From Orbicella franksi (lineage: Eukaryota), in contig OZ116708.1 in the NCBI GenBank assembly GCA_964199315.1, positions 12,090,001-12,154,000 on the forward strand: DNA of 64,000 nt, read 5' to 3'. The notes beneath the pieces were generated by a model. That model was not told the origin of the DNA. It did not search any database and saw only the letters and a program-made list of their open reading frames with translations. Positions within the stretch are counted from its first letter, which is position 1, and the number at the start of each line of letters is the position of its first letter. Positions 9,782 to 22,104 of the stretch are shown here, in pieces. Both the position numbers and the translations under genes were made by a program.

Positions 9782-12700
9782 TCACTTGCTATCTTTGGCC
9801 AGTTCAGCAGCTTTTAGTATTGGTTGAAGCAGAGGAGATCCAATGTCTGTTAAAAAAAAAAATAATAAAAAATAAAAATAACTGCTTAGTTCTTTTCAGA
9901 AACAAAAATGATCAATCTGTACCAGTTGTAACAATATTGGAAGGACCACAACCCAGGCTAGAGTTGGTTGAACCTCGCTTCTAGCAGGTATCACCATAAC
10001 ACAGATACCTCTGGCAATTATTGCTCCCAAAGAAACTGCAGTTCATATAATGATAATATAGGTTGGAAAATCACTTATCTAATAGTCTGAAACCCTGGGA
10101 AAAAGTTTCAAGAAATGATCATGTAGTGTGCCACACAACCCCAATAAAAGTTTTGGGGACTTATCTCCCCACGTCCTAGGGACCCCTTTCATACTACTCA
10201 GGACTTGAAAAAAAAAACTTGAATTCCAGCTTGCCCTTGGGACAAGTAGCTCACGTTGCTCTTTAATGATTTAGTTGGCAGATGACTTGCCTGATCCCTC
10301 GCCCATTGGGCAAGTGAGAATGAAAAGTTACTGAAGGAGAATCTACTTGTCCCTGATGACCAGACGGCACTTTTTTGGAGCTCTGCTACCATGAATATCT
10401 TGTTCAACTGGCTACCTGAGAACCCTGATGATGATGATGATGACAATGATGATGATGATGAAAGCGCAATAATAGGCCAATGAAATGACTAAGTCGGATG
10501 TCTCTTGTGTTGAAATTCTGACAGTGATGTAGGGACCTCGCGAGATTTCAATGTGAAATGGTGCAAAATTCAGACAGGGGATGTCCCTAACATCCCCTTA
10601 ATGAGGCCTCTATGTAACCATTAATTAAAATAAACCAACAGTCTAACAGTCTGAGACTTACATGAGTCGCAACCATAGCACCACACACTCAGATCACTGA
10701 AACTCAAAACCACCATGTGTCCTGATGCGGAGTTGTGCTCCACCATATGGCAATTGACATAACGACTGCAGAAAACAGATGAACACACGAGGCAAAGCCA
10801 ATTCTCACCAACATTATCGCATGTCCCACAAGGCTTAGACAAATCAACATGAAGTGAGGCTACGTTTGTTAGTGCCTGGTGAAGGAATCAAAATATTTGA
10901 TGCAAAGCACATCATTAATAAAACTGAGTCACAAATGCTGACGTCTGCCTTACATGTAACATGATAGGGGTTTATAACAAATAGCTACTCTACAGTTGAA
11001 CCTCTATTAAGTGGCTACCCACGTGTATTGAGTGGCCACCCCTTATTAAGTGGCCAGTTATCAAAGCCTCAGCCAAAATTATTGTCAATGAAATACAATA
11101 ACTGTAAATGAAACCCCTATTAACTGGCCACCTCTGTTAAGGTCCTTCACCATGAGAAGGAGAAGTGCCAATCTTGGTGTCATTTTCCACAAAGTTGGAC
11201 TTCAGTCTCCTTGGGCACGCTTTTACTTTGACAGATGTTTCCTTCCTCTGACCAATATCTGTGTCGTTGTCAGGCATTCTAATGTGCTTTAGAGTAAATT
11301 AGTGCTGAAAATGTTCACTAGACATGAAAAAACTTCTATTTGCTCAGAAAGGCAGCAACACACTGAGTTCGCCCAGGCGCAATGCTAACTTGTGAGCCCT
11401 CAGTGCAGTGATGGAACAGAGCCCCCATTAATTGGCCACCTCTATTAAGCAGTTGCTGTCACCTGTTGATCGTCTCGATGAGGGTTTTTCTATTGCCTTT
11501 ATACTCCTTGTAAATGGTCACCCTTAAATTAATACTTGTAAATTAACTTTGTTTTAGAAAAGGCGATGGCAGATAAGAGTCTGAAATAGAGGGTGGCAAG
11601 TGATAAAAACATTCAAACACATATTTATCATGATTGTCTTGAAGTGACTCCATGTTCACTAAGAAATTAACCTGATAGTGAAAAATATTCAACATACACC
11701 AACCTTTACTAGGCAGACACCTCCCATTCCCCTGGGGTGACCGCTTTAATAGGGGTTTGATTATAGACTGTTCACAGCCCTCTATTTTCTCATATTTTTA
11801 TTCGATCATTGAACACGCGGATAGAATCATGAGAGAACTGGACTTCAGCGCAAAACGGAGGACTTGACTGGGTAGGGGGTGAGGACTGAGATAAATAGAA
11901 GGGCTGTAGACATCTTTGGAAAAAAGCGAATTTCCCGTTTTTCCAGAAATGATCACTTTGCTCGCAAACCCCACCCCCGACCTCTGCACGCTTTGAGCTC
12001 ACTTCGCTCACTTTTTCTTTCACATGTGCAAATATAGAGGCTGTAAACAGTCTATTTGACTATAGTTGTCTAGTTACAATTGGTTACAATTGGTCATACA
12101 GGTGTAGATAGTGTACAGATGATGCCCAGAATGCCAAAAGTTAAACACATTTCTAAAGTGAAAGGTTTGCAATTTTTCTGATACAGTTGAGGATGAGGTC
12201 CCACCTCTGCCTCGCAGGTCCCTCTCTGACCCAGTTATTCAATAGTCTGACAGTGGCATAACACCATAATAAAAAAGCAAATATTAAGCATTATTAGTTT
12301 ATTGTGTCACGCAGGTAAAATTCAGATTACAAGGTGAATGGAAACAGAAGCCACATTGTTCTGAAAAAAATATACATATAAATAATAAATTTGTAAATTG
12401 CAACCTGCAGTTAAACCCTCCTTGGTTGGGCCTTGACGTTTCACATGTACGTAACCAAACCACCAAATTCTGTTTCTCTTTAGTTGTCCACAAAAGCTAG
12501 AGACTCAGCTGTCGATTAAAATGAAACTTAAACTTCAATAATTCACGGGCACTAGACATCAGACACTGTTTTTCAAAATAAGCTTACAGCTTTTTCAAAC
12601 ACCACAGTGTTCACCGCCTTAGCTCGCAGAAACTTAGGACAAAAATTTGAGCTGGTCTTTCAACAAGCTTAAAATATATTTATTTGGAGAGATTTTGTTT

Positions 12701-12942
12701 CACGGAGGGTGAAATAAAATACAAACAAAGCAACAATCGCTTACACGGGCGAGGCATGACAGCTGACTTAAAAGCTTAAAAGTTATTTTTGTTCGACATT
12801 TTCAAAGGAGAGGATTCGCCATCCAAGCTTAGCTATTTTTTTCAAAACAAAAAGAAAAAAAAAATACCAAGACATGCAGGCAGTCCGTCTTAACTTCAAC
12901 AGCAAAACCAGCTTCTGTGGGGACAGAGCCTCCAGCAGCCAT
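9782..12942 (-). CDS. Stand-alone ZnF-UBP (BUZ) ubiquitin-binding zinc-finger protein, HDAC6 C-terminal type, 117 aa
   Basis: Exons 12942-12868, 10875-10662, 9846-9782 (phases 0, 1; GT-AG). Protein: MAAGGSVPTEAGFAVEVKTDCLHVLALTNVASLHVDLSKPCGTCDNVGENWLCLVCSSVFCSRYVNCHMVEHNSASGHMVVLSFSDLSVWCYGCDSYIGSPLLQPILKAAELAKDSK*. All BUZ Cys/His ligand motifs are present. Confidence 0.88.
10425..10460. repeat. (GAT)n microsatellite in an intron of the ZnF-UBP gene
   Basis: GATGATGATGATGATGACAATGATGATGATGATGA seen directly. Confidence 0.8.
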
Positions 12943-13385
12943 TTTCAACCGATGTAAAAACTCTCCAACAACCTTGGAAACAAGGGTCAACAAACTGATG
13001 GCAAGAATGGCAAGAATGGCAAGGCGCCAAACGCACGGTTGGGAGACTGGGGCTAGTGGGCGTGTTGAGACCAAAAAGAAAAAGAAAAGAAAAACAGAAA
13101 AAAAAAAAAAATTGATTTCTAAACACCCAGTTAGACAAAGCGATCGCACATGCTTGGTAAAACGTACTTGCGTGATTTCAAATATGGTTTACTGGATAAG
13201 GAAAATTCTTTACCCGGAAGTACGCGGTGTAGGACAACTTCGTGCAAGTACACACCAGCGAGCTCTTGCTGTTGTTGTGTACTGCTGACAATGAGTTCGC
13301 GGGCTAATCAACATTCTTCGAGAAGCGAGCGGTGTGCTATTCCAAAGCGCGCGCGGGAGTTTCTGCCCGAAAAATTATTAAAGAA
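12943..13385. promoter_or_regulatory. Putative bidirectional promoter between the ZnF-UBP gene and APEX2
   Basis: Divergent start codons 443 bp apart; locally CpG-rich; ETS/GABP-type CCGGAAGT at 13214-13221; GCGCGCGCGGGAG at 13347-13359. Confidence 0.6.
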
Positions 13386-16300
13386 ATGAAGATTTTAACC
13401 TGGAATATAAATGGGATTCGTGCTGCTGGACGTGGTAGATCGATGAAAGATATTTTGGATTCTCTTGGAGCTGATGTTATTTGCTTGCAGGAGACGAAAG
13501 TCACTCGTGAGTAGAGGATATCCCTTCATCATATCAATTTCGGTACAGGCTTTAAGCTTGAACTTTAAACTTCATTAAAATTAAGTTTCCTGTCGTCTTG
13601 AAAGTACAGTTTAGTCATGCTATGTGCTAACATATCAAACTGAGCTTATATTTTGTGATGTGGATTGGTCAACGTTGTTAAAATATCTTCCCGCCAATAT
13701 TGGTTTTATATCCTCGTGGGTTCGGGTGAAGGGAGATAGGGGGAGGGGGGATAAACAATGCAGCATTGCACGCAATTCTATGCACAATAGCTAAATTGCA
13801 TCATCTGTGCCTCCTGAAAAATGTTGCACCATTCGTCTAATCATAGTATTTGCTCCTAATGTTGCAGAAGAAGAATATTGTTCTACAGAATCTGAAATAT
13901 TTGCATCTACATGTATTACAAATTCAATGCATTCTTCTCTTTCTTTTCATAATATTGGTGAGAGCCCACCACGTGACCTGCAAATAACTGCCTACAAATA
14001 CTGGTCTGCTCATGTGTACCATCTAAATGCGTTTTGCTTCAAATAGCATTCTGCTTGCAGTCTGTATGCGTAATTGTAACTACACTGCATGTACGCTCTC
14101 TCGTGAAAAATGGCTGATCGCTTCCCTGAGCTGTTAGAGAGTGATTTTAAAATATGAAAGCAAACTTGGTGATGGAATGATGAACTCAGTTATGGCAAAA
14201 TATGAGTCGTAATTTGTCAATTTCTCACAGACCACGATATTTTGCCCAACCTTGCCCAATAATTGTTAATTGTGTGTGTCCACCGTTGGCAACAAGTGCA
14301 TATTGTGGTATTACACAACTATCAGTCTTTTTCTGTCATTTGGTCATCAAATCTCTAACAAGACACCATGATGAACCATGTTTTTCTTTTGAACAAAATC
14401 ATTTCATCTGTTCTTTTCCAGCTCTGAATGTCTGTGAATATTTTTTTTTTTTTCATCCAATTCCAAATTGAAAAGTGTTACCGTAGATACTTGTAATAAG
14501 TACCGCACACTACAACAAAATAAAATGTTACATTGTAAAAATATTATTTGATAAATAAAAAAAAATTAATTCTTAAGAATACACCACCCTTGCTAAAGTA
14601 TCATAAGCAACCTGACTGAACAACCACATGTTCATCACCTATTTGACACCGTTTAGTTCTTAAGTCTTGCCTAGAAGCAAAGGCCTATACCCTGCTTTTG
14701 GATTAAAATGAGAGTGACATTTTATTCAAAACAGTCTATTTATGAGGTTTTTTTTTATTTAGCAATCGCTCAAATCCGACTGTGATGCTTTTGCCACTCC
14801 TATAAAATGTTACACTAATCAGACAGTTACATACTACACGTATACAATTTGCAACTGGAAAGTGTATATATGTTATAGGTTTTATCTTACTCATAATAAC
14901 TTGTATTGCAGACAATCTGAGGCGAGATCTTGAACGTTTTCTGTGGTTCAAAAGTGTACTTACTAGACCCTGTGTTCTGATTTCAGGTGATATGTTAGAT
15001 GAAGTAACAGCTATTGTAGATGGGTACAATGCATACTTTAGTTTCTCAAAAGTGAAAACAGGGTATTCTGGTAAGAGAACATTTTTTACTTTTTAGACTA
15101 GTCTGTTAGATGCTGCTTGTTGTTCATTGTGTAAATGGCAATTACACCAGATTCCAACCTTGTACCCAGAGTCTTCATTCCCCTTGACCAGCAGTCAGGA
15201 AACAAGCAGCCCTTGAAAGATCTGATTTGAAGTTTGAAAATATCAGACTTCTGTTGGAATTGCACGTGTTTAGCTGACAAACACGTGGCTTAATTGAGGT
15301 GCTGGTGTTTCATTTCCGTCAATTTCCATTGTTTTCAGAACCAATCAAAATCTAGCCTGTAACCAAACGCTCATGAGTGTTCCTTTCATTAAGCTTGCAC
15401 AGTAAGAAACTAAGACTCAAGGGACAAGATTGGACCAGGGTCCTATCACAGGCATAGCCACATTTTCACAAGGAAGTGACACTAACACAATTTACCTGTA
15501 ATGGCAATGGGCCATCATGACATTTTCACTGTTATTTTAAGGTTTCAAAATGTAGGAAACCAGAAAATTATAGTGCTGAGAGGTTGACAAATACAAATTA
15601 AAGAAGCAATTCAATTGGCCAAAACAAAATGAGGATGGTTTAGGATGGAGAAAATTACAACATATAATACAAGTAATGCTCTTGAAGAATTGAGTCTATA
15701 TCTTTCAAGCTGCACAAATCAGTTATACATGTAGAATCTTGGTGAGCCACTTTTCTTTATAAGCAGTCAGTATGTGTTGTGCCAAAAGGTATGTCTTTGT
15801 TGACATTTTGTCTGAAGTAAGTTATAGATTTATAATCAATTTGTGGACTGAAATAGGGTATGGTTTGTTTTATCTATGTTATTTTCATCAATTAATGAGA
15901 GATAAATTTCATTGTTGCTGACAGGGGTAGCTACATTCTGCCGCAATGAAGTGACACCCATTGCTGCAGAAGAAGGTCTCTCTGCTGTGCTCACCCCGCA
16001 GCCCTCTATTGAATGTTATGGGAATAACACAGACTTCACTCTTGAAGACTTGGAAGCTTTAGATGCAGAGGGTCGTGCCATGCTAACAGAACACAGACTC
16101 GATGATGGCAAGTCAGTTGTTATTGTTAATGTCTACTGCCCAAGAGCTGACAAAGAGAATAACGAAAGAGTAGATTTCAAAATGAATTTTTATAAACTAC
16201 TACAGGAGAGAGCCGAGACCCTTGTCAAGGCAGGAAGGTATGTTTGTTATGGCTTAAATTTGTCCTTGATTTACAAAGTTATATACCAGTGTTTGATTTT

Positions 16301-19300
16301 AATTGTCCTTTGTTTCAGGCTACATGTATTTAGTGTACTTGCAACAAAGCAAAATTTAGTTAAAGATGATTTCCAGTCCATACTGCACACTCTTGAGAGT
16401 TTGTTTGCATTTTTTTGTTTTGTTTCATGCAAGACATCACAAAATGTAAACATTTTGCAACTACTTACATGAATTAAACTCAAAGGTTCTAAACAACCGC
16501 CATTATGAATGGGAAGCAGTCAAAGCTTTATGCTTCATTATGTCTCTTATCACTTGATGAAACAACTTCCTCGCTGTTAAATCAATGAAGCTGATGGAAA
16601 AAGAATTTGAAAGGTCTCAAAGATAAGGTATGTTGTTCGTAAGGAATAACATCTATTCACATTCCATCAAGTGAGATTTATAATGTTTATCAATAAAAAC
16701 ATTAGGGTGCTGAAATTATGTAGTGTCGACTGGAAATCATCTTTAAACAAGTAAACAGGGTTGAAAAAAATTGCTAACCCAAAACTAAACACCATGTTGC
16801 TCTTTCTTAATTACTACATATCGCTATGCACAACCTACAATGTATAGGTGAGTGTATAGCGAGTCATCTGAGACATGCAATAACATGAGCCACAAGATTC
16901 AGATAAATTTCCCTGTTCTTTTGGCTCTTCATAGGAGTGCTTGCAGAGCTTCAGTCACAAGGAATGTTTGTGTTCAGTTCCAGAAAATATCCATACTCCC
17001 CCCACAAAAGGGATTGGAATTTCCTGGGGGGAGGTGCATTCTCTAAGACCAAAACATTTAAAGACTGAAATGTATCAGGGAAAGGGGGTTTCTTGGATAA
17101 AATCCCTTCCGTGGGGGAGGGATGGATATTTTCAGGAACTCAGTGTTTTATTTAGTCTAATGAACTTTAAAATTAAATTAAAAACAACGAAATTGAACAT
17201 TTCGGCCATTTTGACCGTGACAATTTGGTCTATTTACAATATTACACTTCACTGTACAGCTGTATTGATTTCAGTTCATATACAAGGCTTTAGAGTCCCT
17301 TTTCTCCACAGGGGCTGGTTTAACAGTCTTTGTATTGAAATGCACTTTCCAAATAAATTTTGAGTAATGTGAAGGAGACAGGTCCCAAATTGTGACAAAT
17401 GAATGAAGTAGCTCATTTTTGTTATTTATTAGTATCTGTGTTGACCAAGTGTCTGACGGTGTACATGTATGTTTGGCTGAGTACAGCTCAAGTTTTGTTT
17501 TGATTTTTTGTTTGTTTGTTTGTTTCTTGCTCATCCTGTAGACATGTCATAGTTCTTGGTGACATCAACACATCACATAAAATGATCGACCATTGTGAAC
17601 CTGACAAAGAGGTAAGTATATTTGTAACCGAAATGTATCTACATGTATAGCCATAACCAGTCCTTAAAAGTCTGCTTGTACCAAGTGGTCCATACCGTGA
17701 GAGCTTATCCTGGTTTCCATAACATAATAAGCATCTAGGAGTATCTGGTAGTAAATCGTTAATTGCTGGAGCTTTCACACAAATACTCATTTATTATATC
17801 ACTTTGGGAGAAAATTACTAACGCGCGCGCGCTAATTTGCACTGCAGTGCAAAGTGAAAATTAACCGTAAATTGGCCTGCTCTTAGCCAATCACGATGAA
17901 GTAATTTTCCCAGTCATATAATAAAAGCAATAATAATATGATATAGAATAATATATAGAGAAGAAAGTTCTCTGTTGAAGCCGCTGTGTTAAAGACTCTC
18001 TGTTGAACAGCATGCATTGCGAGCGTTTGTTTTTGTTTTGATTCTGTCACTGAAGAAAGCGACAGAAAAAGCGGAAGGATTTGGGGCATTTGGCGGCCTC
18101 AAATTTTTGAGATTTTGAACGTGTAACTGAGACCCGAAAGCGGGATTATTGCTAGCTACTTGCGCAGACGCTCTTTGGGCTCGTCACGCAATCTTCCTCT
18201 CCGGGAGGAAGATTGCGTGACAAACGCGTAGAGAGGGTCCGTAGGAGGTTGGATGATTGTACGTTACTTTATTGTTGACCAAGCTTGTTTTGGTCAAGAT
18301 GGCTGGGTATTGGCTCTTTCTTGATTTGTACGATTTATGGACCGAGACGGAGTCGAGGTCCATAATCCAGCCAGCTTGTCCTCACGCTTAATCAATAACC
18401 TATATTACTGAAAAAAAAAACCCCAAAAAAAAACAATCAGACGACTCACACGCAAGAATTCAGTTAAAGTTATGGTTTCTCCTTCACTGTAGGAGTTGTT
18501 CAATGCTAATCCTGGGCGACAGTGGTTAGATCAGTTTTTAGTGCCTGGTGAGATGTCTTCTACAAAACCAGCCGAAGAAACGAGTGAATCTGTTGACGGG
18601 CACGGAGGGATGTTTATAGATACCTTCCGTTATTTTCACCCCTCCGAGCGAGGTGCGTACACCAACTGGTGCACAGTAACCAGCGCGCGTCAAACAAACT
18701 ACGGCACACGAATCGATTACATATTTGCTGACGTGGAGCTCGTTCGAAAAGAGTTCGTCGATTGCGAGATAAGAGCTGATATCGACGGCTCCGATCACTG
18801 TCCAGTTGTGGCAACTTTGAAGACATGTTTCCAAGCTGCGCCTAAAGCACCGGCACTTTGTACCAAGTATATGCCTGAGTTTGCGGGAAGACAGCAAAAA
18901 CTGAAGTCATACTTTGCAAAGCACGTGCACCGACCTTCGCAAAGTCAACCCGAGGCCACTCGTAAATCACAAGAAGTAAAATCACCTTTAAAACGTAGTG
19001 CTTCTCTTGATGGCGATAAAACTAAAGCCATAAAACGCCAGAAATCTGCTGGAGCGAAAGGCAAAGCCGACAGCCAACCAAAGACGGATTTGTTTAGCTT
19101 CTTTTCAAGATCTTCAAGCTCTGTTGCGTCAGATAAGAACGTCGCAGCTGAGGTCAGTGAAACCAATAAACCAGACAATGGCGTTTCTGACATAGCATTG
19201 GCTCCTCAGGCAAATAGTGTTTCTTTGGGTGTAAATTCTGACGATTTCGTGTCTAAAAACACTACAAACCTTTCTCACAATAAAACTGTCACTGGTAGCA

Positions 19301-19527
19301 GCAAAGACTGCCCTGAAAAACGCAAAGGTGAGGTTGCTCTGTGGAAGAACATTCTCACCGGGCCCCGCCCACCCCCTCTCTGCAGTGGCCACAAGGAACC
19401 TTGCGTCTTAAGAACAGTTAAGATCAAAGGCCCCAATCAAGGCAGACAGTTTCATTGTTGTGCTCGACCGCAGGGACACAGTTCAAACCCACAGGCTCGT
19501 TGCAATTTTTTCAAGTGGGTAAAATAG
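13386..19527 (+). CDS. APEX2: DNA-(apurinic/apyrimidinic site) endonuclease 2, 540 aa
   Basis: Exons 13386-13506, 14987-15070, 15925-16237, 17542-17611, 18493-19527. ExoIII motifs WNINGIR, QETK, NVYCP, GDINTSH, RIDYI and GSDHCPV; PIP box QQKLKSYF; C-terminal zf-GRF (CSGHKEPC...GRQFHCCARP...RCNFFKW). Confidence 0.95.
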
Positions 19528-20425
19528 ACTTCTGCAGGTGCATTGTCGCATTCTTGTCTGTCACTTGTCAGTGCAAGAGGTGTGGGACGATCGATATCTG
19601 GCGAAGGAGCGTAGAGGGATATTTGAATATGGCCCCTTTTTATGTGGGGTCAGCTGAAGAGAACTGCACATGGTAGAGCGAGCGGATGAAGGGAGATGCT
19701 TTGGCAGTGATACAACACGAATGACATACTCATAGCCGTAACTGTTGCTATTTAATACAGTATATTGTGAATTTATACGCTAGTTTAGTAGAGGACCAAG
19801 CAACAAACCAAGTCATAGACTACGTGCTAGTTGCCTTTACATAGGACAATACCATTCACATGAAAGTGAGCTGTACACATTGAAGCCTAGTTTTGAATCA
19901 GGCGAAAGACATCTCGGTAATTGCAAGGTGGGATGTTGCGTGTATTCGTTTGTGCAGATAAAACAATTCGACGAAAACTTTTATACCGTAATTCCCAGAT
20001 TTTGGATCCTCAGGTAGTTGAAAGGCTAACTAATAAACATTTTTGCATAATAAAAGTAATAATTGATAAGTGGTCATAAATAAATTAGTTATCATGATAC
20101 TTCTTGGTTTTAAACGTACGATATTCGCGCCGGTTTTGTGTATAGACATTGTTTCAGGGTCCGATGATCTTACCTTGTGAAGCAGCTTGCCCGAACGACT
20201 ACTCAGACAATGAAATATCAGCCGTTCAAGTTAGAATGGTGTGCCTCGAAAAAATCAACACGAGCCGCCTTAAGGACATTCGTTCTCAAAATGTTCAGAT
20301 CTTTTTGAACTTCTGCTGAGGTTAGGTAATAGTCAACTCTGTCAGAAGCGCAAAGATAATGGGTTTTCACTGCTGTTTCCCTTAGGTAAGGCGTATTGAA
20401 GGCCTTGCTGTTTCGTCTGGCATGT

Positions 20426-20911: not shown

Positions 20912-22104
20912 CTATGATATGTATGAACTATGATCAGCCAAATTCTTGCAGACAATGGCGTTAGTCTTATTACAGGTGTGGTCATTCCAGTAGCCATTGA
21001 CCGGGAGCTCAGCTGTGTTGTCAATATACATCTCTCCGCATGGTTCGTGCTCAAATCCATTGGGTTCACCCGGACTCCAATAGGTGAAGAATGGATGTGA
21101 GTTGTCAATCCAGGTCCAGTCGTCGGCCTCGGTATTGAAGCCCAGCCCAATCCAAACATGTTTCACTGATGGAGCTTCCTGTCTAACAAGTTGCATGACG
21201 AACTCGTTTTCCCCGATGTTGTTAATCTTCACTAGGTTCCCGCCCTGGGAAAGGCAGTACTCTTGAGCCGCGGACCAGGAGGCAGTGAATTCCTTCACCA
21301 GATAACAGTAGTCTTCAAACTGGAACCAGCTACTAGGACAGGGATCTGGAAACGAGTTGAAATGTTTGTCAGTGGGTAAAATAACATTCTGCGCTTGCTT
21401 TTCCGCTGTCCGCGCGAGGTCTGGTGAAGTCACCGCTTTTAATAGACTCCAGACTCCTCCGAGCCGAGAATCCTTAGGAACGAGGCTGATCCTGCGGAAA
21501 TGGTCATTTCCAAGTTACCTTGTGCCTCTTTTTCAAAACGAGTCCTCGTGCAAACTTTTCATTGAACATGAGTTTGATTTGCATGAAAATGAACCTGTAA
21601 GGCGGAACACATTTTCATGTGAATGGTTTCGCACTAAGACTCGTTTTGACACAGAGACAAGCCAACTCGTTGCTCCGCCAAGTCGCTAATCACCGATTGC
21701 ATTGCAAACTTACGCGATTTGAAGAGGGTAATACTGCATTGATTGCGACTACATTCGATAATTTACAGTGGTTTCAACTTCTTGCGTAGAATTTTGTAAA
21801 CTTTCAATTCGGGGTCAACGAAAGTTGTCCTCTTTTTCTGAAAATTCCGGAAAATGATGCTCTCTTCTCCACTGCAAAAGTTCAGAAATTCAAATGGGAA
21901 TTTTTGGTCGAGTGGAAAACGCCTTTAGCGATTCTCTTAACTTGATCATTGTTTTTAAAATTCCTGGGCACTAATAAAATCATCAAGAACGAGTCCATAC
22001 AAACAGATCTGGGAATCATTCAAAGACGTTACTTGAATACCTGATGTGCACTCCGTGATACTTAGAGCCAAAAGACATAGTGAGAGAACTGCAAGAGTCT
22101 TCAT
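20912..22104 (-). CDS. Secreted C-type lectin (EPN/WND, mannose-type), intact paralog of the 2420-3746 gene
   Basis: Exon 22104-22041 (signal peptide MKTLAVLSLCLLALSITECTS) joins in phase 1 to exon 21345-20912 (DPCPSSWFQFEDYCY...WIGL...GEPNG...CGEMY...WNDHTC...CK). Its acceptor context (AAACATTTC..CTCGTTTCYAG) is shared with the other lectin. Confidence 0.88.

Follow-up and report, generated by a model that had tools for sequence, protein, structure and literature searches.

A free-standing HDAC6-type zinc finger in the coral Orbicella franksi: an expressed member of a widespread family that most likely reads free ubiquitin ends

What might a ubiquitin-reading zinc finger do when it is not attached to an enzyme, and how might it have come to stand alone? 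The question is raised by a small minus-strand gene in a 64,000-nucleotide stretch of the genome of the coral Orbicella franksi (contig OZ116708.1, positions 12,090,001 to 12,154,000; henceforth the window, in whose own numbering plain positions are given). Its 117-residue product consists of a short N-terminal tail, one ZnF-UBP domain of the HDAC6 type – also called a BUZ domain – and a closing helix, and an enzyme domain is absent. Among readers of unanchored ubiquitin the HDAC6 zinc finger is the best known, and it is also a drug target; to our knowledge, vertebrates and yeast have no free-standing version of it, and the domain has therefore been studied only within HDAC6. As set out below, we put at roughly 70% the probability that the coral gene is an expressed, BUZ-only orthologue of a pan-cnidarian gene in a widespread family, and that its product most probably has unanchored ubiquitin or the free ends of polyubiquitin as its ligand.

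The identity of the domain is clear from its second coding exon, which by itself matches the Pfam family zf-UBP (PF02148) with an E-value of 5e-18 and 65.5 bits (cut-off 22.7). Its best solved relatives are the zinc fingers of HDAC6 (zebrafish 5g0f, E 8e-24; human, 3e-22), the next family being USP49 at 7e-9. All 12 zinc ligands, serving three zinc ions, align with those of HDAC6 (C21, H23, C41, C44, C53, C56, C61, H68, H72, H78, C91 and C94). The pocket residues W51, R63, Y64, W90, Y92 and Y97 fall on HDAC6 W1143, R1155, Y1156, W1182, Y1184 and Y1189, the human numbering being derived from the aligned PDB sequence and the residue names in PMC3268394. Ligands and pocket residues are mostly invariant across an alignment of 42 homologues, and the pocket for the Gly-Gly end of ubiquitin, which the original prediction held to be intact, is indeed complete. 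An AlphaFold2 model with a predicted local distance difference test (pLDDT) value of 87.6 finds HDAC6 ZnF-UBP structures as its top PDB matches in Foldseek (human 3C5K, 3PHD and 3GV4, and zebrafish 5G0F; template modelling (TM) scores of 0.92–0.94, root-mean-square deviation 1.3–1.8 Å), among them the complexes with ubiquitin and with the peptide RLRGG (3phd, 3gv4).

The coral protein thus has in common with the HDAC6 domain its fold, about 55–60% identity over exon 2, the same 12 zinc ligands, the Arg-Tyr gate and the aromatic cage for the ubiquitin C-terminal Gly-Gly. It differs in being unattached to a deacetylase, in having its own start codon and 5' untranslated region (5'UTR), in sitting beside APEX2, in lacking the C-terminal K-F-G-E motif and in its intron positions, which are not those of a bilaterian HDAC6. 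An Arg and aromatic residues likewise let USP5 (IsoT) recognise the free C-terminus of ubiquitin, yet its zinc finger is far more distant (about 22% identity in a structural alignment) and feeds a catalytic USP domain.

How such a pocket works is known from HDAC6, where R1155 and Y1156 are gatekeepers that close over the buried Gly-Gly and the R1155A/Y1184A mutant abolishes binding (PMC3268394); the key Arg guides the backbone of ubiquitin Arg74/Gly75 (PMC3268394; 10.1101/2025.09.28.679104). In a survey of human ZnF-UBP domains, binders share this Arg and up to five aromatic residues, and non-binders lack the pocket (bioRxiv 10.1101/2025.09.28.679104). The coral domain carries both hallmarks of the binding subclass, the key Arg (R63, equivalent to R1155) and the suite of pocket aromatics. 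Because the zinc sites, gate Arg and aromatic cage are intact, binding of free ubiquitin ends is the most likely function: the Arg and the cage would together bury the free C-terminal Gly-Gly of ubiquitin, as they do in HDAC6 and USP5. The polyubiquitin unit encoded by the coral genome itself ends in RLRGG.

None of this would matter if the open reading frame were a fragment of something larger. The gene is, however, a real, spliced, transcribed and independent unit of four exons, three of them coding. The 354-nucleotide coding sequence runs from the ATG at 12942 to a TGA at 9782–9784, and every junction between coding exons is GT..AG. Coding exon 1 (12868–12942; 75 nucleotides, 25 codons) carries the first zinc ligands, C21 and H23, and is followed by a phase-0 intron at 10876–12867. 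Coding exon 2 (10662–10875; 214 nucleotides) holds the ZnF-UBP core, with zinc ligands C41 to C94 and pocket residues W51, R63, Y64, W90 and Y92, as seen in both the PF02148 and the HDAC6 structure matches; the intron behind it (9847–10661, phase 1) lies directly before Tyr97. Exon 3 (9772–9846) encodes Y97 and the closing helix in a 65-nucleotide coding stretch (9782–9846) that includes the stop codon, and continues for 10 nucleotides into the 3'UTR.

The splicing is supported by a 913-nucleotide transcript-like contig from the Joint Genome Institute (JGI), L048, which is about 99% identical to the window and matches it at 13031–12867, 10876–10662, 9849–9764 and 7984–7523; the coding exons are therefore spliced as modelled. 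Raw poly(A) reads of run X24 and a contig of run X1 also cross the joint between exons 1 and 2 (12867/10875 in RNA and in L048), as a 10874->12867 junction with CT..AC on the plus strand. Positions 377–462 of L048 cover exon 3, where comparison with the genome places the donor GT after ...GAATTGAAG. Positions 453–913 correspond to 7984–7523 at 98.9% identity, which reveals a third intron of about 1.8 kb within the 3'UTR (7983–9771, boundaries ±2 nucleotides), beginning 10 nucleotides past the stop, and a non-coding exon 4 at 7523–7982 behind an acceptor ...CATAG. The lower end of that exon is the end of the contig and hence a minimum. The original prediction, whose coordinates, product length, pocket motifs (ENW, RY and WCY..Y) and 443-bp distance to the neighbouring ATG are all correct, took the gene to span 9782–12942; because of the non-coding exon, it reaches below that. 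The protein P0173, translated from L048, a contig of the metatranscriptome type, is exactly the 117-residue product with 16 residues of read-through 5'UTR sequence in front.

The 5' end bears on the reading in which these exons would be the 3' end of a larger HDAC, USP or sirtuin gene, its upstream exons lying beyond APEX2. The frame is open for 69 codons 5' of the BUZ ATG, and HDAC, SIR2 and ADP-ribosylglycohydrolase domains are all fusion partners of this module in other eukaryotes. Yet positions 2–166 of L048 equal 13031–12867, so that the 5'UTR, which extends at least over 12943–13031, is colinear with the genome and no acceptor upstream is used, and the X1 contig likewise follows the genome without a break across 12867–13510. 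The first in-frame stop 5' of the ATG is a TAA at 13189–13191, with no in-frame ATG in between. The start, MA.GG, is kept in coral homologues known from independent gene models and transcript contigs, and Porites, in which the orientation relative to APEX2 differs, still has a 117-residue model. In addition, no PF00850 (Hist_deacetyl) exon was found on C11, the genome contig that carries the gene, and a true two-domain HDAC6 used as query matched C11 solely at the BUZ exon. These observations largely refute the mis-annotated fragment, to which we give next to no weight, and confirm that the gene stands alone with no deacetylase exons attached. The tandem Hist_deacetyl domains of HDAC6 are missing: PF00850 is absent from the open reading frame as it is from C11, and the transcript starts just 5' of the ATG; for these reasons the product does not qualify as an HDAC6, even though databases use names such as 'HDAC6-like'.

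If this protein is not part of an HDAC6, does the coral possess one elsewhere? For the genome's own DEACETYLASES, Hist_deacetyl exons were found at five loci, on contigs C12, C5, C6, C3 and C9. The C12 locus is HDAC1/2-like and that on C5 class IIa-like; by their motifs, C6 looks HDAC11-like and C3 class I-like. The sole class IIb locus is on C9 and has one catalytic domain (G000:C9:4109313-4118108, plus strand), whose exons score best against the second catalytic domain (CD2) of HDAC6 (5.5e-13), ahead of HDAC10 (1.2e-10) and CD1 (3.4e-10). Neither a second class IIb catalytic domain nor a BUZ was found within 70 kb of it. The genome has a single copy of the HDAC6-type BUZ exon; the other three zf-UBP matches have no HDAC exons nearby and no HDAC locus within megabases. 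Repeats overwhelmed an all-against-all comparison of open frames from the HDAC loci. Just downstream of the C9 deacetylase domain lie two copies of about 1 kb, 95–100% identical and 5.5 kb apart (G000:C9:4118394-4119475 and 4123940-4125000), which may represent a pair of transposons or a duplication introduced in assembly.

The coral thus appears, as far as its genome sequence tells, to lack a canonical two-domain HDAC6, and the question of whether the genome's HDAC6 keeps its own BUZ is answered by a lone C9 deacetylase that has none. Since the C9 catalytic domain is alone and the BUZ exon single-copy, the small protein has no BUZ-bearing HDAC6 as a rival, and the proposal that it might act as a competitor of HDAC6 aggresome signalling falls away. 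If anything, it is the only HDAC6-type reader in the genome.

What such a single-domain reader of unanchored ubiquitin C-termini would do next is a matter for speculation. Devoid of an effector domain, it would work by occupancy, and could shield or mark free chain ends, for instance against USP5-type disassembly. Alternatively, its conserved flanks, the N-terminal F-A-V..K strand and the C-terminal helix, could make it a small adaptor, perhaps acting in trans with the single-domain HDAC6-like deacetylase on C9. Several points weigh against the ubiquitin-reading interpretation or fail to strengthen it. Expression is low, at about 3x over exon 2 in the raw-read runs: the poly(A) runs X22 and X23 have almost no reads on the gene, only the X24 reads and the X1 contigs are informative, and most of the depth falls on dispersed repeats. 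Ubiquitin is not bound by the zinc fingers of USP22 and USP39, whose role is structural, but both lack the pocket (10.1101/2025.09.28.679104). No partner or phenotype was found in the literature searched for any free-standing family member, nor anything relevant on cnidarian HDAC6 architecture or on stand-alone ZnF-UBP proteins generally. When the 117-residue protein was modelled in complex with three zinc ions and the ubiquitin unit of this genome (L041:1495-1722), the score was 0.23, the mark being 0.34, a result that speaks neither for nor against binding.

The domain might instead read another free C-terminus – that of a ubiquitin-like protein or some other tail ending in GG – or be a structural subunit. 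ZnF-UBP ligands and roles do vary: the domain of USP16 also binds Fubi and a tail of histone H4, and USP22 and USP39 have structural ones (10.1101/2025.09.28.679104). In addition, the C-terminal K-F-G-E motif of HDAC6 and of most other free-standing members has been lost in cnidarians. But the coral domain retains all the residues that define the ubiquitin-binding subclass and is 55–60% identical to an HDAC6 domain that binds RLRGG tightly, so that such a departure strikes us as improbable.

Orthologues of the gene occur in other cnidarians. Oculina patagonica, Montipora capricornis and Porites lobata each have a gene model of 116–118 residues with PF02148 only, and further corals are represented by transcript-derived proteins of 116–121 residues; in Oculina and Porites, too, the gene has three coding exons. 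Pairwise ratios of non-synonymous to synonymous substitution (dN/dS) among corals are 0.16–0.27 at dS values of 0.43–1.17, which indicates purifying selection. The orthologue of the hydrozoan Hydractinia symbiolongicarpus, 113 residues long, has both introns in the same places – two to three residues past C-x-H and just before the last pocket Tyr – and the positions of introns 1 and 2 are thus common to Orbicella, Oculina, Porites and Hydractinia. A 109-residue version of hydrozoan type is found on three cDNA-like contigs of about 1–2 kb, each with an in-frame stop 9 nucleotides 5' of the ATG and no other long open reading frame. In view of the matching introns and these contigs, the gene should be at least as old as the split between anthozoans and hydrozoans. 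The coral gene displays all the features of this cnidarian orthogroup: a length within 109–126 residues, PF02148 only, an N-terminal MA...F-A-V-x-x-K-x-(D/N)-C-x-H motif and both intron positions.

The orthologues are in fact already in public annotations, albeit under misleading names such as 'HDAC6-like' and 'sir2A-like'. They appear as free-standing UBP-type zinc-finger proteins: in Montipora capricornis as 'histone deacetylase 6-like' (116 residues), in Porites lobata as 'UBP-type domain-containing protein' (117), in Oculina patagonica as a hypothetical protein (118), and in Hydra, Hydractinia and Clytia as 'NAD-dependent deacetylase sir2A-like' (113–122). These share with the coral gene its length, N-terminal motif, PF02148-only content, three coding exons and intron positions. 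Orbicella franksi departs from them in having Leu for the usual Pro of their D-C-P-H motif: it and its nearest relative, P0174, have D-C-L-H at codons 21–23 (12874–12882), and almost all other family members, as well as HDAC6, have C-P-H. A protein from a closely related coral, P0172 (182 residues; 63 member sequences in Logan), runs on past the usual stop into a 65-residue tail with a K-F-G motif that other cnidarian copies lack; the tail may come from use of another 3' end or from loss of the stop codon.

Beyond cnidarians, a profile built from their proteins retrieved 718 proteins of 65–206 residues at E <= 1e-10, and PF02148 was the only domain in 120/120 of those listed. The taxa among the matches listed include Hydra, Clytia, molluscs, an annelid, nematodes, arthropods, Monosiga, glomeromycete and chytrid fungi, a lycophyte and Pistacia, together with many protist transcripts marked 'complete'; Amoeba proteus and Apiculatamorpha have BUZ-only proteins as well. 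In the ESM Atlas, clusters with zf-UBP only (143–156 residues, up to 443 members) are mostly from plants. The free-standing HDAC6-type BUZ is thus an old, widespread and already catalogued, if functionally unstudied, family, of which the coral gene is a new member rather than a coral novelty.

The same module also occurs in protists fused to enzymes or repeated, as in P0016, P0020, P0037, P0045 and Paratrimastix P0015, whereas in the coral it is alone. SIR2 is joined to BUZ in P0016, P0020, P0023, P0045, P0050 and P0066, ADP-ribosylglycohydrolase in P0030 and P0037, and GGACT in P0041; P0015 consists of three BUZ copies. Fusion not just to HDACs but to several de-modifying enzymes, among them sirtuins and ADP-ribosylhydrolases, suggests a recurrent coupling of free-ubiquitin-end reading with the removal of modifications.

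Which came first, the free BUZ gene or the HDAC6 fusion? A maximum-likelihood tree of 50 BUZ domains, in line with the phylogeny that the original prediction called for, recovers cnidarian and bilaterian clades but does not resolve the deep relationships. Bilaterian stand-alone BUZ proteins are interleaved with bilaterian HDAC6 domains in a starred clade (95/94), and that of Mya is sister to Mya HDAC6 (100/98); such copies look like offshoots of HDAC6. The cnidarian domains form two starred clades, one of corals (97/94) and one of hydrozoan type (99/95), both of which lie outside the bilaterian clade, among stand-alone proteins of choanoflagellates, fungi, plants and protists. The deep split that sets cnidarian and other eukaryotic domains apart from those of bilaterians stands at only 82/71, and a single clade of all animal BUZ domains is not rejected by the approximately unbiased (AU) test (p = 0.30). 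Intron positions differ along the same line: the stand-alone gene of Mya and the HDAC6 of Helobdella have in common an intron just before C-S-R-Y/F that cnidarians lack, and Helobdella HDAC6 is without the cnidarian intron before the last Tyr.

Long proteins were searched with a profile of 14 cnidarian rows and one HDAC6, admitting lengths of 550–1750 residues. It matched 533 proteins, and the named entries among the best 120 of these were all bilaterian HDAC6 (PF00850 plus PF02148), with no HDAC–BUZ fusion from a cnidarian, sponge, fungus or protist in that set; the long proteins among the best 150 of an exhaustive search agree, the named fusions being bilaterian. Taken together, the restriction of named fusions to bilaterians, the placement of cnidarians in the tree and the intron differences favour, without proving, a history in which BUZ was a free gene first and became fused into HDAC6 in bilaterians. 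On this basis one might tentatively suppose, at somewhat less than even odds, that cnidarians keep a pre-fusion HDAC6, made up of a CD2-like single-domain class IIb deacetylase and a free BUZ, that HDAC6 in bilaterians duplicated its catalytic domain and captured the BUZ, and that the two coral proteins may cooperate in trans as a two-piece HDAC6.

The original prediction had also raised the opposite course, a fission of HDAC6. As an event in corals this is disfavoured, since the hydrozoan gene shares the intron positions and BUZ-only proteins span eukaryotes; placed in the cnidarian stem, it is possible. An ancestral animal HDAC6 with two catalytic domains and a BUZ would then have split into a truncated deacetylase gene and a BUZ gene that gained a promoter and a start codon. 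Such a split would leave what this genome has, a solitary class IIb domain of CD2 type on one chromosome (C9) and a solitary HDAC6-type BUZ on another (C11); the coral BUZ is nearer to HDAC6 than to any USP, and a single clade of animal BUZ domains is compatible with the data, as the AU test indicates. Yet free-standing BUZ proteins occur in a choanoflagellate, fungi, plants and amoebozoans, in which no HDAC–BUZ fusion was seen among the matches listed; the named fusions among the best long matches are exclusively bilaterian even though the profile was mostly cnidarian; the cnidarian introns are unlike the one common to Helobdella HDAC6 and the Mya gene; and the cnidarian sequences fall outside the starred bilaterian clade. 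We regard fission in the stem as rather unlikely, and the older free gene as the somewhat better account.

The surroundings of the gene are conserved over shorter distances. It lies head to head with an APEX2-like gene on the plus strand, the two ATGs being separated by a 443-bp intergenic region (12943–13385) that is presumed to be a bidirectional promoter. Exon 1 of the neighbour (13386–13506, ATG at 13386) matches Pfam Exo_endo_phos (E 4e-7); together with a GRF zinc ribbon in the final exon (19279–19524), this endonuclease/exonuclease/phosphatase (EEP) domain makes up the APEX2 architecture, as the original prediction had it. The order in Oculina – APEX2 head to head across a 429-bp gap, BUZ, C-type lectin – matches the window. 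In Porites lobata (L032), BUZ lies downstream of APEX2 on one strand, in contrast to the head-to-head layout of Oculina and the window (9782–19557), an arrangement that reads as a local inversion keeping the two genes adjacent; a Peptidase_C12/UCH_C gene comes next in both Oculina and Porites. The Hydractinia gene has unrelated neighbours. The hint that the location of human HDAC6 and APEX2 on Xp11 might echo an ancient linkage finds no support, the adjacency being present in Oculina and, inverted, in Porites, absent from Hydractinia and Mya, and tied to HDAC6 by no evidence.

C-type lectin exons flank the BUZ/APEX2 pair at 3315–3518 (plus strand) and 21116–21344; the former is syntenic with the lectin gene downstream of Oculina BUZ, and the similar copy lies beyond APEX2. 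The introns of the BUZ gene harbour dispersed repeats resembling short interspersed nuclear elements (SINEs), at about 9292–9620 in the 3'UTR intron and at 10112–10440 and 11752–11915 in the coding introns. On these repeats the RNA contigs reach 100–1000x the depth of the exons and show many variant joints, along with loose ends that stem from other copies. The part at 9540–9680 looks tRNA-derived (minus strand), although ARAGORN called no tRNA in the repeat. A (GAT)n/(ATC)n microsatellite occupies 10425–10460 within intron 2.

For the window alone this is a modest finding, whose main value is as a pointer to the family and to the origin of the HDAC6 domain architecture. That the module occurs alone, under purifying selection, in cnidarians and in many other eukaryotes means that the reading of free ubiquitin ends can be a function in its own right. 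With this family, the role of the domain in the absence of a deacetylase could be studied in a minimal natural setting, in tractable cnidarians such as Hydractinia and Nematostella or in fungi and plants, and the family frames a testable question: how HDAC6 was assembled.

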